DNA from: Geosiphon pyriformis uo1
Lineage: Eukaryota; Fungi; Glomeromycota
DNA length: 64,000 nt
Direction of reading: 5' to 3'
NCBI GenBank assembly: GCA_016748015.1
Contig: JAAOMT010000595.1
Location: 4,282 to 68,281 of the forward strand
A model generated the notes under the pieces. It ran no database searches. It had not been told where the DNA came from and was given only the letters and a program-made list of their open reading frames with translations. A program made the position numbers and the translations under genes. Below are positions 35,334 through 51,400 of the stretch, in pieces. Numbering within the stretch: position 1 is the stretch's first letter; each line of letters begins with the position of its first letter.

Positions 35334-37396
35334 AATATTATTAAAATTAATTAAAAAATAATTTAACTTTAAAAAACAAATTAAATTGGTAAAAATTTAA
35401 TATATAAGATTAATTTTATAAATATCTTAATCATTATTTTTTTAAAAAAATAATAAAAAATTAAAAAAATAGTTTGTATTATTAACAAAAAATAATATAT
35501 TAATATAATTTTATATTTTATATTAACACTTTTAAATTTTAATATTAAATATTAATTGTATTTTTAATAAATATTTATTTAATAGTTTTTAAGATTAATA
35601 ATTATACAGATCAGAAAAAAATAAGATATGTAAATATTAACAAGTAATTTTTTATTTACAGATGTTTAAATACTTAAAAAATCAAAAAAATAATATAAAA
35701 TAATTAAATATTTAGAAGTAATTTTTATTTTTTTGATTTCTTACATGTTTTTTATAGCTAAAAAACTTATTGCTTATATAATTATTCAAAATTATTAATA
35801 ACTAAATTAATAATTATTATCTAAAAATAAAATAGTTAATTATATAATATTAATAATTAATATATATAATAATTAATAAAAATTATGATTTTTAATTGTA
35901 ATAATATAAATATTTATATTAATTATTATTATTTTGTTTTTAATTTTTTAATTTTACTTATATTTTTAAATAAATAGTTGTTTATTATTGGGTTAAGTTT
36001 TAGTTAAATTTAAATTTAACTTGAAAATTTTTCATTTTTAATAAATTAAATTAAGTTTAATAGCCTATAATTTAATCCAATTTATTATTTATTATGTATA
36101 GAAATTTTATTGATAAAATTTTTATTTCTATTAATAGATAATATTAAATTTATTTTATTTTATATTTTAGCTATTAAAAACTTATTAATAAACAAGTTAA
36201 ATAAATAACAATCAATTAATAAAAGCATATTTTTATAATTAAAAAATACTTATTTACAAAAATTATATTTAATTTTTTATTGTTAAATTGTTTATAAAAA
36301 TTCCAAATTCATGTTTTTTTCTTTTTTTTTAATTATAGTAACCATAGTATTTATTTTAGTATTACTATTAAACATATTGTTTTTAATATCAAATATATTA
36401 TTTTAATTATTTGTTATCTTTTAAGTTAAAAAAAACCAAATTAGAATTTAATTTATATATATATAGAACTTGATAAATTAAGTTAAATCATGAAATTTTA
36501 ACTCATATCAATTTTCAATCAACTTTTATGAGTCAAGTATCAAGTTAAAGAAAGTTAATTCAATTCTTTTAAAGATTTAACAAATTTATTTTTTATATCT
36601 TAAAATTTATTTTTAATTTTTAAATTAAAATTTGTTGTTATTACTGCTAAAAAAAGTTAAAAAAAGCAAAATTAAATTTTAAAATTAGATGTTTAACTGT
36701 TAATTAACTAAACAAATATCTATTATATAATAATTATAAAATAAGATAAATTTTTATAACAAGATTTTGAAAAATATGTAATAATTAAATATTATATTAA
36801 TATATATTAATTTATTTTAGAAAAAAATTTTCTAATAATTTAATTTTAAAAATATAAGATGTAGAAAATATTTTGATAAATAGAAATATTTTGACAAAAA
36901 TAATAATTTGTAATAGATTGTTAATAAAAATACTGTTTGTTTAAGTAAAAAAATGGTATAAATTCACGTGTTTTATTTTCGCACATTAATTTATTTTGCT
37001 AACTTTGCCATAATACTCCATTCACTAAAATACTTTTTTTTACAGTTTAGTATAAGTTTATTTAAGAGTATTTATTATAATGTTTTAAAATAATATCAAA
37101 AAATTAATAACAATATTTTATATGTATTAAAATTTTAAATTTAAGATTTTCAAATTACATTTCTATTATTTGTAAAATCAGAAAATTAATGATATATTAT
37201 AAGAATATAATAGATAAGTTGATTTAAACTGATTTTATATTTTTGCATTTTCTAAACCTTGTAAAAAATAATTTGAATTTGAAAAATAAAAAAATATATT
37301 AATTTATGCAAGTATACTAAGCATTAAAAATATTTGCTTAATAATGCTTATCAATAAAATGCTTATCAGTTTCAAAGTCGCCGCACTAACTTTTCT

Positions 37397-37500
37397 ACTA
37401 AGAAAGGTTACCTCTACGCCCATGTATCTGGTCAAAGCAAAAAGAGGATCCTAATCGACACAAAACCTCTCACCCGATTCCCGAGAGTTTTTCGCTACTG
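37397..37500 (+). pseudogene. tnpA: IS607-type serine recombinase TnpA remnant
   Basis: KGYLYAHVS, then a frameshift, then SKQKEDPNRH. This matches the resolvase catalytic motif YARVSSxKQKxDLxRQ. The rest is deleted. Confidence 0.7.
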
Positions 37501-37559
37501 AACGTAGGAACAAAAAGTGCAAGGGAAAGGCAATAGTAGCCCAGAAGACAGAAGGTATC

Positions 37560-39250
37560 CTCAACTGCACGTTACTAGTCAAGATTTATTTCAACCACCT
37601 TCAGAAGCAGCTGTTGAAACAATGAATGGGCTTGGCAAGATTTGCCTGCGCATGAACTTCTTGATGCGAAAAAAAGAATTTTTGTTGAAATGTAAATAGG
37701 AAATAAGTGGCGCGGCCGGATTTCGTTGAGCCACAAAACCAGTACTAGGGCTCAGGGGACTCTTCTTACCTGTGTTAAAGTCTTTTCGCTGACCTGATGG
37801 GATGAAAACTAGATGGAAATATTGTAGATATACCAGTTAAAAATATAACTAATTTCTCAAATCTTCTATGTTAGAGATCATATCCTGATTATCATGTAGC
37901 ATGAAATGGTGGAAGGAGTGTAAATCTGTCAGTGGACCTTCAGTTCACTTCCACCACATTACAGATAGTTCAGTAGTCGGGGTCAATCTTAGAGCCTGAA
38001 GGAAAAAGGAAAGAAAGGGCTAATACTGTAATGGGATGGAGCGAAAGACATCACATCATTATGTATCACGTAAAAGAATGAATAATACCTATGACATTTC
38101 AACAAAAAGTCTTCTTTTTGATGATGTTTCGGCTATCTGGGGTGAAAGAAAGATTTGCAGAGCCATCATCCGTCTTGGCACGCTCTTAAAGCTTATTTGG
38201 GCTCAGCTCCTTCCAAAGTCACAGACGAAGCGATTGGTTGCGCAGAAGGAAGTTATTAAACGTAATGCACAGTGACAACAAGATGCATCACATCATCTTT
38301 CTTTTCAATCTCGTAAGGCACTGCATCACACCATGACAATTCGTGCTCAGAATTTTGCCGAGTTACCTTGGATCCTTCTATATATCTTACCTTCACACTC
38401 CAACAATATATGCATATGCACATCGACACAAGGTAAGGATAATAAATTTTTACGTTTTTGTTGTTTTTTAAATTGTTTTATATGTCGTTCTTATCCCATT
38501 TTTTATTCTTTATTTTTAACGATAAACATGTACTATGGCCTCTCCAGTTCGAGAAAAAAAACGTAAAAATAGTGAGTGGCCCAATTCATCCAAGATCACA
38601 TCTGATGGCAAGTTCACTTATCGCAAAACTAATGAATTGAAGTTGCCTGGGTATACGAGACGCAAAAACAGCTCCGCGAAACCCAAGTGGATGGCTCTGT
38701 TCATGCAGTCTCCATAGATCGCGGAATTCGCACTCCCCAACAAAAGGTGTAGGCAAATTTATGGATGACCTTTGCTTAACGAAAGATAAATTAAATACCT
38801 CTTCAAAATGTAAGAAAGCTAAAGCCAGAAGATTAGAAAAGGCGATTAGGTGCATGCATCAAAAGATCTTAGACTTGCAGACAGAAATACACATAAAGGC
38901 TGTTGCATTTTTCCCTCGCAAATTTGATGTTATTGTCATTCTCCCTTTGAGGTATCGGACATGGTGAATCGAAAAACGAGAAAAATCACACGAAAAACAG
39001 AAAGATACTATGCTGGGGGCACTATCGATTTCGTCAACGTCTAATCACCAAGGTAGAAGTCCGAGTTATCCAAAATGAGGCCTATACCTCTAAAATTTGT
39101 AGCAGATGTAGAAATATTTAAAGAACGGTGGATCTGAGGTATACCACTGCCTGATTGTAAGCTTGTTATGGATAGATAAAAACTGCGCTCGGGGATCTTC
39201 CTCCGGGCTTTGCTTGATGTGGAACAGGAAATAACAGGCGTCACATAGCA
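37560..39250 (+). pseudogene. tnpB: Fanzor2/TnpB RNA-guided nuclease pseudogene
   Basis: N-term LVKIYFNHLQKQLLKQ*MGLARFA (37575-37646) and LSFQSRK (~38300). RuvC-I HAVSIDRGIRTP (38702-38737) and the helix RLEKAIRCMHQKILDLQTEIH. FDVIVI(P)PFEVSDMVNRKTRKI and WGHYRFRQRL. QNEAYTSKICSRC (39071-39109), a second CxxC, then MDR..NCARGIFLRALLD. Several frameshifts and stops. Confidence 0.9.
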
Positions 39251-39673
39251 ATGCTTAGTATTGCCTATTATTAATATAATCTCATGTGATTGGAACTCAG
39301 ACCACCTCAAATTGTAACTTGAAGCAGATGTAACCTTTGCGCCTGATGTGAAAATTAAAGCCTAACTAGAATTAAATTTCCTAAAAAACTTTGAAGCCGA
39401 AAAGGTGTTTTTATGCTTCGAATTTTGTAGCTAAATAATAAATGCCTAAAATTTCCAAATAAAAATTATCTATGTACTCACTTCTGGCTAGAGATTAAAA
39501 ATTATTGCAAAGAATTAATGACCGTCTTTGATTTTTGAACTTTCTATAATAGAAATAGATATATATTATATACTAATAATATATATATATATGATATACA
39601 AGAGTGGTTAGTATGTCTGACTAGCACATATATATAATGTCACTTTTGAAGTAGGATATTAATGCTTTTTCTT

Positions 39674-42600
39674 TTATGGTATACCAAAGTCTCTGGCACC
39701 TATTGCCCTTCTTTGATTATTAGAGGTAGTTGATGTTGTAGGGGCATTTGAAGTATTAGCGATAACAGTTGTCTGAGAAGCAATGATGCTACTCATTCCA
39801 TCCTGATACCATAAAGACTGTCCGGAATTATTGATACTACTCAATCTCCAAAGATCACCAGGAGTATTAACATTGTTACTTTCATTAGGGCTCGATGTAA
39901 CACTATTGCTCGTTATTCCGACCGCCGAATTTTCATTGATGGTTTCGGTGGTTGGTCTTCGTATTGGCGGCCAATCTTGATCACTGACTGTATGTCGATG
40001 TGAAGAACGTGAAGAAGAAATTGGAGGAACCTGTGTTGACGGATTTTGTTTTACTTGTTGACATGTGTCGCGACCTGCTTTCGTTTTGTTTTATTGCGTT
40101 ACTTTAACATAAATTCACGCATATTAAGATACAAAAGTGCACACTCAGTGACTCACAATACCATGAGATAGGGGTCATTGAAGTATAAAAGTACTAACCG
40201 GCTGGTAATGGTGGGAATAAAGAACTCGAAAAATATGAATCAGGTTCCAAAGGTGAAACAAGACTTTGTCTTCGAGTTGTAATTGATATCGGTTCATCAT
40301 CTCCGTGTAATATATTGGGAAATCCGGGTGGTGGTGATTTTTTACCTTCAAGTATATTCGTGGCATTGGAAGCAGATCCTCTTCGTGGTCTTTGTATAGG
40401 AGCGGGTCGTTGTATTGCTTTTGAAGTAACATTATTAGGCGCTTGAATTAAATGTGAATCATCATGATGTGTAGACATGCGACGAGAATGACCGATAGGA
40501 GCTAAAGGCGGATTTGATACAATATTATTTGGTACAGTTTGCCCAATTACTTGGGTCCCTAGATTAAATGTTTGTACACCCAAAGTTCCTGGTGCTCCAC
40601 TTAAAGGTAAGCCACCATATACATTAGGTGGATTAGTACCTATTGTTGATACACCAGAACCAATATTTCCATTACCACCCAAAACAGGCTCATTAAGAAT
40701 TGACAAGTTCGATGAAGCAACAGACGTGGGCACACCTGTAGGTGGTACAGGTAAATGTGGATTGTTAGACATAGCATTATAGCCACGAGGTGGCATAGCT
40801 TGTCTCATTTGATGATGTGGGTGCATCACTGGAGGACCGTGATGTTGTACACCCATACCAATCGTTCCCAACCCTGTTGCAAACAAAGATGATGTAGAAT
40901 TTATTCCAGGAATAGTGTTCGTTTGTGTTGTTGGTGGATTAACTACTTTTTTATTGTTTGTATAGATATCACTTAAAATGTCATTGGGAATACCTGCTGC
41001 TTGTCCACCATATTGTAATGGTTGATTGGCACCAGATGCTCCAAATAAATGATGTGTTTGATGTGAAGGGGGAAGATGGGGAAGAGTGGGATTAACTGGA
41101 AGTTGTGGGGGTAAATTTTGAGGTCCATCAATTGTTTGATAATTTATCCAACTGATTGAACCACCATTAGCCATAGAACCAACAACTTTGGATAAGGTTC
41201 CTGCTTGATGTTGTGGTTGCGTTTGTATCGGTGGTTGAGCAATAGGAGCAACTTGTCTTTGATGCTGATGTTTCCTTTCATATTGTTGCTTGGGAGGCGG
41301 TAATGTAGCAATCCTTTGTTTTTCCTCCCTTTCTCGTCGTTCTTTTTCTTCCCGCTCTTCCCTTTCCTTACGTTCTTTTTCTTCTTTCTCTTTTCGTAAT
41401 TTTTCTTCCCGTTCACGTTTCTCACGCTCTTCACGTTCTTTTCGTTCTTTCTCTCGTGCCTTGAGCTCTTTCTCTTGCCGTTCTTTCCTTTCGCGTTCTT
41501 CACGCTGTTTTCGCTCCATTATTTCTTGCTCTTTTCGAGCGCGTTCCTCTTTTTCTTTTCGCTCTCTTTCTTCTCTTTCTTTACGCTCTTTTGCCTCTTG
41601 TTCTTTTCGCCGGCGCTCCTCTCTTTCCTTTTCTTCCCTTGCTTTTCTTCGTTTTTCCTCTTCCTTTTTTAGCCTTTCTTCCTCCTTTGCACGTCTCTCT
41701 GCCTCCTTACGAAGTCTCTCTTCCTCACGGCGCTTACGCTCTTCCTCCGCCTTTTTCTCTCGCTCAGCACGTATTGCCGCTTCTTCGGCTAATCTTTCTG
41801 CCTCCTTCCTTGCGCGTTCTTCCTCTTTTTGTTGTTTTTGAGCGCTAGAGATGATCAAATCAGAAAGGTATTAATTCTCGTTGATTTAAAATTGGGTGAT
41901 GGAAAATGACTTGAAAATTACCGCTTCTTAGCGTTCTTTTTTTCTTTTTCTTTCAACTTTTTCTGTTCACGTTCCTCTTTGAGGCGATTCTCCTCCTCTA
42001 ATTCCTCCAAAAACTTCTTTTGCCGTTCTTGGGCAACCTTTGGTAATTAATTTCGGATCAGTATTTCATATATGTATGAGCTAAATTTAAGAGTCAAACC
42101 GATTTGACCAACCTTTTCTTTGTACGCATTAAGAACTCTCTGCTCAAACATTTTTGCGGCGAAAATTTGAAACATTTGTTTACTGTCTTTCATCCGCTGC
42201 TCTTGAGTTACATGGTCCTATATGAATGAAAAATTTAATTATATATTATCAAAAAGAAGTCATATTTCAAAAAGAAATCTAACCTCATCAGCTTCATCTT
42301 CGTACTCATCATCGTATTCCTCATCTTCTTCTTCGAATTCACGTTGTTCCATAGTAGCAGCTTCTTCCTCTCGCTGCATTCGACGTTCTGCAAGTCGCTC
42401 CATCATTTCGAGGAATTTTTTTCCGTCATTTTTCATTAGATCATCAGCTACAGTTAAAATGCCACCTGAGCCAATAAACCATTTTTGTTACAAAATCAGA
42501 AAATTCGCTTATCTATTCTTTTAAGTCGTACTTTCGCCATCTCTTTCTAGGCGAAGTGGCTATGACGCACCTTTCACAGTCAATGGGTTTCCAAACTGGA

Positions 42601-48465: not shown

Positions 48466-51400
48466 CTACACAACTATATTTACCATAACTTCACCAGCAG
48501 CACTAGTGAAAAACAAATGGCTACTACTCAAGCCAAAGCTGACCACATGACCCCTATCTACTCCCAGTAAATAAGCGACACCACCTGAAATTCTAGCGGG
48601 GAAACCCTGGACAATGTTACATAAAGATCCATCCGCACCCAACAATCCATGCTGCTCCATTTCCACTCGAAGTTTCGAATTGGGTATCTAAATCTGCTCC
48701 CTATGGCCAACAACCAGACTCTGAATAAACTCGACCAGCCTCAACATCGCAAGCTTAGAATCCACAAAGAATGTTTTAGCCTCTGTTAGCCAATTATCCA
48801 ACACTAAATTCTTGCACAAAGCTGTATACAGATCACTATCGGAAACAGAAGAAGCCAGAGACTGCAGAACTGCAGACGATGACAAAGTAGCCCCAGTAAA
48901 AGATTTCCAAAGAGAGGAGTGCTCACACAAGATGCCCTGACACATCAAAAAATCCAAGTGACAAGTAAAACTATGATCAGAAAATTCCACCTCCCCGCAA
49001 CATATACATGATACACTAGGATAATTCCGATTATACAAATGCTTCCTAACAGCCACTGGCAGCCTTCTGTGTAAAGTCTTCATCAAATATGTGTGCAAAC
49101 TGGCAGTGGTTCTGCTTGTATATCCAGCTGACATGTGAGAATCAGGATGCCAGACCAATACAGTACAAAACCAATTTATGTCCCCAATCCATGAAGAATC
49201 CACAACACTCAAACCAGATCTAAATTCCCATTGGAAATGCCTAACAGTATTATTTGCTATCCTAATAAAGTGGTGTGCCTTGCCGGAAATCACCTTACCA
49301 TCTGCCAATAAGAAATTCTCTTTGATGTTTGCTGGGAGAAAAAGTCCCGATGACGTGGCTGTATCAGTCAAACAATCAGCGTGCTCATTACTTAACACAC
49401 CAGAGTGACCCTTTACCTTCACCCAGACAACAGAAATGTTTTTACATTTGACCAAATTGGCGATATGATGGCACTCAACCCAGCATTTGTTGTGGAAATC
49501 CAGAGCCACCAAACTCAATTCAGTCTAACAAGCATCCAAGGAGGCCTGGCTGTTAGAAAGAACTATAACATCCAAAAAAGCCAGAACACACTCAAGCACC
49601 AATGCAATAGCCTGCATCTCAGCTAGGGTAGATGACAACAGACCATGAACCTCCACACCTACATGCAAACCCAGATCAGAAAAATATGTGGCAGCTCCTT
49701 CGACAGCATCAGAAGTACCAAAGTTTTTAATAGAACTATTAATATAAACTGAAATCACCGGCAAAGAAGCATCTTTCAGACTAGAATAAACAAAACTGAA
49801 GTGGTCCATATCCAAAATGTCCAATTTAAGAGGAGACTCAACAGCAGGAGATGCACCCTTAACCAAACCACTATTCTTGACAAAACCTGAAACCAGTGTA
49901 AACCACAAGGGAACTGAGCCTCTGAGATCCAAATGCTTTCAACAGCGAAAATTTTTCCAATCAAAACATTCCCCATGACTGTCTAGCAATTGGTCTGCAA
50001 ACATGATCCTGAAACACTTCAGCAATCTGCAAACCTGGAGATACATTGTCTGGTCCAAAATATCCAGAACAGAAAAACCTCTCTTGAGATGAAAAGCATT
50101 GGGTAAACTATTAGTTAGGGAAACTTCATTACGTAGAAAAATTTTTGTGACACCAGCCAGAAAATTGTTTGTTGGGTTGACCATCAACTTTACAGGAGAT
50201 CGAAGAGGGTTTCAAAGAACCCAGCCTAAAACCTGCAAGTCCATCGACCTATGTCTAAACAGTCGGCCCAACATTCCACCATCATTAGCAAACTGTAACA
50301 CTGATGAGACTTTTGCTTCTGCCTAAACTTGCTCAAAGAGCTTCAAATTGTACAAGAAAGGATGGTGTACTGCCTCGTTAAGAAAGTCTCTAGGCAGACT
50401 GGCCTTAAACTTCAAACCCTTTCTAATTACACAGTTCCATTTCTCGCATGTGCTCCTACTGACAAAGCTGAATTGAGTCCTATATTTTACTATAGGCTGT
50501 AAAACAGCTGACACCAAATAAAAGAACTGCTTGTCTGTGATAGCTTTGCGCAAAACCATGGACGAGAAAAACTTGACATCTAAATTTGTCTTCTTCAGAC
50601 TTGGACCAGAAAGACCCTTGGTTGACAGAAAGATACCTAAATACCAATGAGTTTCGCCAGCCTTTGCAATTAAAATTGGAGACCTGCTCACTTTTAAGGA
50701 GATATTGCTAGACCTTGGATTAATAGGAATGGCAATTGTCTTCTTAGTATTAATTGATATATCCATTAACCCAAAAAATTCACTAGCAATGTTCAAAATA
50801 TTCTGCGTTGCTGTAAGACAATTGCCAACCCAAATGGTATCATCCACGAAAGCACCAGCAGACAAATAGAAAGTCAAATCAGCATTTGATTCAATTCTGC
50901 CCGTCCTGACTACAAATTTGGAATCAACTCGATATCCAAAAACCAACTCATGTTTCTTCATTTTGCACAAAAGAGGATCATAAAAAATCCTCCACAAAAA
51001 AGGAGAAAAAACTTCATTCTGGTCCAGACCGTTATGTACTTTGTAGCCCTCAGACAGACCAAAGTCTGTCATAACTCTGTTCATGTGACCATTGTAAATA
51101 CTACCAAAAAACCTGATGAATTTTTTACACATCTTAATTCTCTTCAGACTACCTTTCAAATGTAATCAACTCACCGAGTTGTAAGCTTTGTGCATGTCCT
51201 GAAGTACCAATTAAAGTTCCCTACTCTTTTCCAAAGTGTCTTCTATAACAGATCCAACAACAAAGATAAGGGGCTGAGTGGAAGTGCCTTTCAGCACTGA
51301 AAAATTGTCTCCACGTAGAACGTTGTGTGTGCTGCAGGCTTTCGAAATGTGATCAGATAGAATTTTTGAAAGAATCTTCCTAGAGGTCTCAATGAGAGCA

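Follow-up and report, generated by a model that had tools for sequence, protein, structure and literature searches.

What kind of element lies broken at one locus of the fungus Geosiphon pyriformis uo1, and which nuclease did it once encode? The locus is part of a stretch of 64,000 nucleotides (contig JAAOMT010000595.1 of assembly GCA_016748015.1, positions 4,282 to 68,281 of the forward strand), which is called the window here and whose own positions are used throughout. An earlier note on this DNA had read 37314-39270 as a hidden IS607-type TnpA followed by Fanzor2, a eukaryotic TnpB. Our analysis indicates, with high confidence, that 37322-39288 on the forward strand is a copy, dead and non-autonomous, of a eukaryotic DNA transposon of the IS607 type, which once carried a serine-recombinase TnpA together with Fanzor2. 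The locus proposed earlier is retained, with its 3′ end moved slightly outwards to 39288; the limits of the element, approximately 37322 and 39288, were set by where likeness to sibling copies in the genome ends.

The identity given in the earlier note is upheld: the closest solved protein is a Fanzor2 of mimivirus, and siblings have clear TnpA relics between the left end (LE) and the Fanzor gene. All of the listed motifs are found in their places in a three-frame translation of 37250-39330, and the open reading frame (ORF) track does show just a 68-residue scrap of the element (ORF 38761-38967). The copy was correctly judged dead, with at least 12 frameshifts, several stops, a TnpA that is mostly gone and a 373-bp insertion. 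The relic is real but ordinary and has no function now, and the Geosiphon family is a further member of the already known Fanzor2/IS607 type of element. Its parts in the window are the following.

37322-37369, forward strand: LE; the 5′ ends of 7 siblings align from here, with unrelated DNA upstream.
37358-37463, forward strand: N-terminal relic of TnpA, an IS607-type serine recombinase, recognized by DNA homology to siblings L051-L053.
37455-37583, forward strand: overlap zone of TnpA and Fanzor2, compared with P0151 and the TnpA of L077 (both from intact relatives).
37480-37490, forward strand: deletion junction, at which at least 225 bp of the TnpA catalytic core are gone relative to siblings.
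37584-37647, forward strand: Fanzor2 N-terminus, start of the HTH_OrfB_IS605 region, located by tblastn of P0003 (an intact public relative).
37648-38020, no strand assigned: private 373-bp insertion, not shared by about 25 siblings, that interrupts the Fanzor gene close to codon 24.
38021-38432, forward strand: remainder of Fanzor2 exon 1, before the nuclease domain, aligning to P0003 residues 73-171.
38433-38520, forward strand: relic of a spliceosomal intron, 88 nt and AT-rich, with GT..AG at the same place in siblings.
38521-39221, forward strand: Fanzor2 exon 2, RuvC-I to RuvC-III with the zinc ribbon.
39190-39288, forward strand: right end (RE), presumably the 3′ portion of a guide-RNA (omega-RNA) scaffold, defined by 25 sibling 3′ ends.

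Classification of the nuclease

When single pieces of the window were compared with the PDB, only noise or weak Cas12f matches were obtained; a profile of sibling pieces was needed. This profile (A1) is an alignment of 31 stop-free, in-frame pieces from the siblings and the window. Its RuvC-I is SIDPGIRTPF and its canonical RuvC-II site is FDAIVIPPFE; IIQNEAYTSKTCSQCG, CRNC and DRDENGARGI follow in that order. The best PDB match of A1 is 9b0l, the TnpB-like protein L79 of mimivirus, a Fanzor2 (2.1e-27, from RuvC-I to RuvC-III), while Cas12f and TnpB chains do no better than 1e-13. The same ranking is obtained with P0003, a protein of 463 residues with HTH_OrfB_IS605 and TNB domains, whose residues 3-37 match PF12323. 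Searched against 1.8 billion representatives, A1 finds 1028 proteins at E<=1e-30. In the intact relatives a TnpA of 243-248 residues, consisting of a MerR helix-turn-helix (HTH) and a Resolvase domain, is encoded just upstream of the Fanzor gene. Judged by these comparisons, known Fanzor2 is nearer to the family than Fanzor1, TnpB or Cas12 are. DPG at RuvC-I together with a Glu placed six residues ahead of the zinc finger has been described as the signature of Fanzors and pro-Fanzors (10.1101/2023.08.09.552727), and the Fanzor type carried by IS607-like elements is Fanzor2 (PMC3627910; PMC10530073).

Comparison with known systems shows where the family resembles them and where it departs. Mimivirus L79 (9b0l) shares the DPG, the non-acidic residue at the canonical RuvC-II site, NE..T.KTC before the zinc ribbon and DRDEN, as well as a linked serine-recombinase TnpA in an IS607-type element (PMC3627910; PMC10530073). 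Unlike L79, the Geosiphon family resides in a fungal chromosome and not in a virus, has a spliceosomal intron, and is represented by copies that are all dead as found; only about 75 nt of non-coding DNA follow the gene, where the mimivirus element has some 200 nt (PMC10530073). Bacterial pro-Fanzors (IS607-family TnpBs, e.g. ISXfa1) have the same tnpA-tnpB order and the same DPG and shifted Glu, and they too are without terminal inverted repeats or target duplications (PMC3627910; 10.1101/2023.08.09.552727), whereas the Geosiphon family has a eukaryotic host, an intron and far more copies than a typical insertion sequence. The TnpB of ISDra2 (IS200/IS605; 8bf8, 8exa) is of the same fold family and has the TNB zinc ribbon (E 2e-3 with A1), but its RuvC-II Glu occupies the canonical position, some 50 residues ahead of the zinc finger, and it is paired with a tyrosine (HUH) transposase rather than with a serine recombinase (10.1101/2023.08.09.552727).

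The Fanzor2 gene

The whole Fanzor part of the window is covered by P0003 (E 4e-11 and 1e-11). Its residues 3-22 align to 37584-37643 at 55% identity, after which the insertion cuts off the rest of the HTH; residues 73 onward align from 38126 onward, and residues 265-349 align to 38731-38940 at 41% identity. At the N-terminus the translation of 37581-37643 reads KIYFNHLQKQLLKQ-TGA-MGLARF, where a Trp codon has become a TGA stop (37623-37625). The remainder of exon 1 contains frameshifts and a further TGA at 38273.

The catalytic residues lie in exon 2. RuvC-I reads SIDRG, with the Asp codon at 38717-38719; the family alignment and the siblings read SIDPG, i.e. the Asp of the DPG is kept and the Pro is mutated in the window. 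The canonical RuvC-II site is non-acidic (FDVIVILPL at 38923-38949, IVIPPF in the family), and a 1-nt deletion splits the family IVIPPFEVSDMV (ancestral IVIPPFE) into two frames. The shifted Glu is found in NEAYTSK (IQNEAYTSKICSRC) at 39077-39079, followed by a Cys, six residues ahead of the zinc finger. The zinc ribbon extends over 39098-39158, with CSRC at 39098-39109 and the second Cys pair at 39148-39158, and RuvC-III reads MDR (Asp 39171-39173) and then a stop; the ancestral Fanzor2 stop codon was removed by a deletion of about 20 nt. The RuvC-I Asp, zinc ribbon and RuvC-III named in the earlier note are each present and homologous to the family motifs, and the rearranged catalytic site that it described, non-acidic at RuvC-II and with the Glu at 39077, is the published Fanzor/pro-Fanzor signature.

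Further support for exon 2 comes from domain and sibling matches. A piece of 56 residues (38951-39118) matches the Pfam family Cas12f1-like_TNB (PF07282) with 23.5 bits (E 6.5e-5), and a genome-wide TNB scan recovers the same place in the window, siblings reaching 72.9 bits. An open piece of 143 residues from sibling L053 matches 38644-38910 (E 6e-11, 52% identity).

Measured against a consensus of 16 copies (see below), the window has 8.1% substitutions, five deletions that keep the frame and at least 12 indels that shift it. Among the 96 substitutions, 40 are C>T or G>A. As the cause of death, repeat-induced point mutation finds no support, since C>T and G>A outnumber the reverse transitions only about 2.8-fold.

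The left end and the TnpA relic

The LE carries a 19-nt subterminal motif, in two direct copies, that is found in 12 loci. In the window one copy, TGCTTAATAATGCTTATCA, is at 37335-37353, and the second is half deleted (37360-37369). Downstream of these, GYLYAHVSG is read at 37406-37432 (Ser codon 37427-37429), followed by a frameshift and KQKED one frame over. The DNA of 37395-37463 is 81-89% identical to L051-L053, whose translations match Pfam Resolvase with 31.8-40.2 bits; L053, in particular, matches residues 41-204 of the intact L077 TnpA at E 1e-33. This sibling DNA and the Resolvase match bear out the identity that the earlier note gave to TnpA, but not its survival. Most of the gene is deleted, leaving about 23 N-terminal codons around the catalytic Ser and a C-terminal tail; in siblings, 225-900 extra bases separate the matches to window 37484 and 37541. 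Within the overlap zone, the TnpA tail is in the frame of 37508-37696, and a K/R-rich stretch before the Fanzor start is in the open frame 37455-37622.

In the window and in L053, the copies with both a recognizable LE and a readable Ser motif, this motif is only 84-152 nt from the left end, which leaves no space for a MerR HTH. Copies of this subfamily were probably mobilized in trans. Relics of TnpA that do have the HTH occur at a few other places in the genome (C667:97832-98344 and C658:236321-236668). The TnpA frame of the window/L053 subfamily (37322-37432; L053:1355-1510) seems to begin at an ATG within the second LE repeat and to be without the MerR HTH of the relatives.

The insertion and the intron

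Matches to window 37647 and 38021 abut in about 25 siblings, so that the 373 bp between them are private to the window copy. The inserted DNA is almost unique, with only two weak matches elsewhere in the genome. It is not a tRNA-derived element, as no tRNA was found in it, and it is not a known repeat. A 25-nt stretch within it (37669-37693) is complementary, in inverted orientation, to 38094-38118 at 92%, and a 15-nt stretch is likewise complementary to 38026-38040.

The intron relic begins with GTAAGG, and its 3′ AG has become AC at 38519-38520; 22 siblings read GTAAAG...TTTTTAAG at this place. The intron of the 16-copy consensus measures 86 nt, with 13% G+C (GC), and the frame in which the consensus matches P0003 changes from one side of it to the other. 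Removal of the 86-nt segment from the consensus yields one open frame of 414 codons that matches P0003 residues 73-417 at 48%, a result that serves as a local frame check only. An alternative 3′ end at 38547 was rejected, since 38521-38547 encode DKHVLWPLQ, matching the relatives, and the sibling AG falls at window 38519-38520. The intact relatives P0003 and P0151 have no intron at that place. Acquisition of an intron shows that the family has long resided in a eukaryote.

The right end

The 3′ ends of 25 siblings are alike through a hairpin to a terminal motif and diverge beyond it. In the window the hairpin arms are at 39230-39239 and 39263-39272, and the terminal motif, which is degenerate, is at 39276-39288; the sibling tip is ACAATCCATCCG, and the intact relative L077 ends in the same ...ATCCATCCG tip. 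A motif related to the LE subterminal repeats is also present at the RE. With its conserved sequence and recurrent hairpin, this region may have supplied the guide RNA. There is no terminal inverted repeat common to the siblings and no target duplication (the 10 bases flanking the window element on either side differ), which fits IS607. A perfect 12-nt inverted match pairs 37314-37325, which falls mostly in the flank outside the LE, with 39250-39261 in the RE hairpin loop; it is not seen in siblings and may be due to chance.

The family in the genome

The assembly searched comprises 128 Mb in 792 contigs, and all counts from the genome search are lower bounds. At least 130 relics are spread over many contigs, with at least 118 matches to the TNB domain, 133 to the Fanzor piece of L053, 131 to intact TnpA and 89 to P0003 (at E<=1e-10). 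At the DNA level siblings are 68-81% identical to the window. The earlier expectation of a nuclease/transposon family in this fungus is borne out by these relics, but not its suggestion of intact siblings: no intact copy was found in the assembly, where stop-free matches span at most about 141 query residues and longer ones carry stops. Intact relatives were found only in public metagenomes and in another assembly.

A MAFFT consensus of 16 near-full copies is open in both exon frames, matching P0003 residues 73-171 and 191-417 without stops. The open frames show that the masters were intact and that the damage is private to each copy. Frameshifts that had appeared common to the copies were dismissed as an artefact of a consensus anchored on the window, the MAFFT consensus being open. 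From masters whose genes were open, copies of the family reached at least 130 places before they fell into decay. Two of the copies, L052 (C649:448676-450857) and L053 (C783:1107-4412), are the same copy by identical ORF translations, coordinates and scores over their common stretch; the pair may be an assembly duplicate, a haplotig or a recent segmental duplication.

As far as the assembly shows, a large Fanzor2/IS607 family in a fungal genome is wholly extinct, and the ORF track shows almost none of it. With working masters implied by the open consensus, the relics document how a transposon with an RNA-guided nuclease rose and died in nature. For those in search of tools, the Geosiphon assembly offers no intact gene; the metagenome relatives P0003, P0151, P0004, P0128 and P0074 are worth testing.

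Strength of the assignment and alternative explanations

Several results weigh against the reading of 37322-39288 as a dead Fanzor2/IS607 copy from an extinct family. The TNB score of the window piece is just below the Pfam cut-off of 26.3 bits, and the window's own HTH and TnpA pieces match no Pfam model. The L077 TnpA gives no tblastn match on the window at E<1, so that the assignment of TnpA in this copy depends on the homology of its DNA to that of siblings. For the RE, RNAalifold finds no consensus RNA structure; single folds recover the hairpin, but with modest z-scores of +0.7 to -2.9. Finally, an intact copy may exist in unassembled or unscored DNA. Among the profiles that the earlier note had named, TNB is narrowly missed by the window piece and Resolvase is matched through the siblings, while OrfB_IS605 (PF01385) has no match in the whole genome, as expected for a divergent RuvC.

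The alternative that survives best, although we consider it very improbable, is that the locus is part of an endogenized giant-virus fragment containing a Fanzor2 element, and not a copy transposed within the fungal genome. Fanzor2 is enriched in giant viruses (PMC10530073), and the Atlas clusters nearest to the family are giant-virus (Nucleocytoviricota) TnpB-like proteins. A viral fragment is difficult to reconcile with the siblings, whose homology halts sharply at the element ends with unrelated flanks each time, or with the scanned large ORFs of the window, none of which matches a Pfam family pointing to a virus. The founder of the family may nevertheless have been of distant viral origin.

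Still less probable is a relic of Fanzor1 carried by a non-IS607 transposon. The same DPG and shifted Glu occur in Fanzor1 (10.1101/2023.08.09.552727), which is an RNA-guided nuclease, is found in fungi (e.g. Spizellomyces punctatus) and is the commoner type in early-diverging fungi (PMC3627910). Against this, the best solved match is the Fanzor2 L79, with no chain named Fanzor1 among the PDB matches listed at E<=1 for A1 or P0003. The intact relatives, with HTH_OrfB_IS605 and approximately 463 residues, are typical of Fanzor2 (PMC10530073), whereas Fanzor1 is larger, has no detectable HTH_OrfB_IS605 and is associated with other transposon types (PMC3627910; PMC10530073); the transposase linked to the Geosiphon gene is an IS607-type serine recombinase.

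Bacterial IS607 DNA, present by contamination or very recent horizontal transfer, would account for the gene pair and its order and for the intact relatives without introns, but it is scarcely credible for a copy that sits between 10%-GC intergenic DNA and a gene with a fungal NST1 domain, in a family with a GT..AG intron and at least 130 decayed copies across many contigs. An equally negligible chance is given to the TnpA-like motif at 37406-37432 being fortuitous and the element a Fanzor-only unit: the motif is short, has no profile match and carries changes (R to H, second S to G), but the same DNA in the 81-89% identical siblings reads YGRVSS..QKEDLERQ and runs on into GSGINFKR and DRLCRF, the translations matching intact TnpA at E 1e-33.

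Proposed history of the element

The ancestral Fanzor2/IS607 transposon consisted, in order, of an LE with two direct subterminal repeats, tnpA, the Fanzor2 gene and an RE with the hairpin and conserved tip. Its Fanzor2 had an N-terminal HTH, DPG at RuvC-I, the Glu six residues before a C4 zinc ribbon, DRD at RuvC-III and one spliceosomal intron in its gene. TnpA, by analogy with IS607, would have excised the element and inserted it without target duplications. As in other Fanzor2 systems, a guide RNA transcribed from the RE and the flanking DNA would presumably have led Fanzor2 to the emptied donor sites, where cutting and subsequent repair would restore the element and so favour its retention. 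The window copy has lost most of tnpA, gained the 373-bp insertion, lost the 3′ splice site of the intron and acquired its frameshifts and stops.

Possible two-frame coding in intact relatives

Several intact relatives are called as proteins of 590-650 residues, of which the first 180-230 codons are in the +1 frame of an intact tnpA. This overlap with an intact tnpA is found in L077, L086, L088, L090 and L089; in L078 a stop interrupts tnpA within the HTH part. The longest Fanzor2 frame begins 4-124 nt past the start of tnpA, crosses the catalytic domain of the recombinase and overlaps almost the entire tnpA gene, the frame pairs (tnpA/Fanzor2) being L077:2078-2818/2202-4148, L086:85-816/173-2062, L088:90-758/94-1881 and L089:878-1624/1002-2954. 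The extension ends in K/R-rich stretches resembling a nuclear localization signal (NLS). In the window the last 43 codons of the long Fanzor frame are retained, open and continuous with the Fanzor start (37455-37622).

The openness of this frame was assessed by recoding tnpA synonymously 5000 times with the codon usage of each locus. In the +1 frame 5-7.6 stops are expected from the recodings and 0 are observed, the probability of none being <0.0002, 0.0002 and 0.0016 in three lineages; the remaining third frame of tnpA has 4-10 stops. Conservation of the extension could be a by-product of the constraint on TnpA, so independent evidence comes solely from the absence of stops in the frame. It is therefore a tentative suggestion, to which we give somewhat less than an even chance, that the Fanzor2 frame through tnpA adds a K/R-rich, NLS-like N-terminal extension and that tnpA and Fanzor2 share coding DNA. 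If the long frame is translated, one eukaryotic mRNA could give both proteins by leaky scanning, with DNA coding in two frames. No paper describing a two-frame overlap of tnpA and Fanzor2 was found; if real, it would be a new answer to the problem of expressing a two-gene bacterial element in a eukaryote.

Setting of the element

The element forms a GC island of 32-44% between DNA of 8-17% GC on either side. It lies in a host chromosome, next to the gene with the fungal NST1 domain. Among the large window ORFs scanned, those 8 to 15 kb away have Pfam matches to LRR, RRM and reverse transcriptase. An Rfam scan of 36500-40000 gave nothing relevant; a sub-threshold match to SNORD78, a C/D-box snoRNA, at 39450-39510 on the reverse strand (25 bits, cut-off 38) is probably due to chance. 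The ORF at 50323-51156 on the reverse strand has a weak match to RVT_1, which points to another mobile-element relic in the window.

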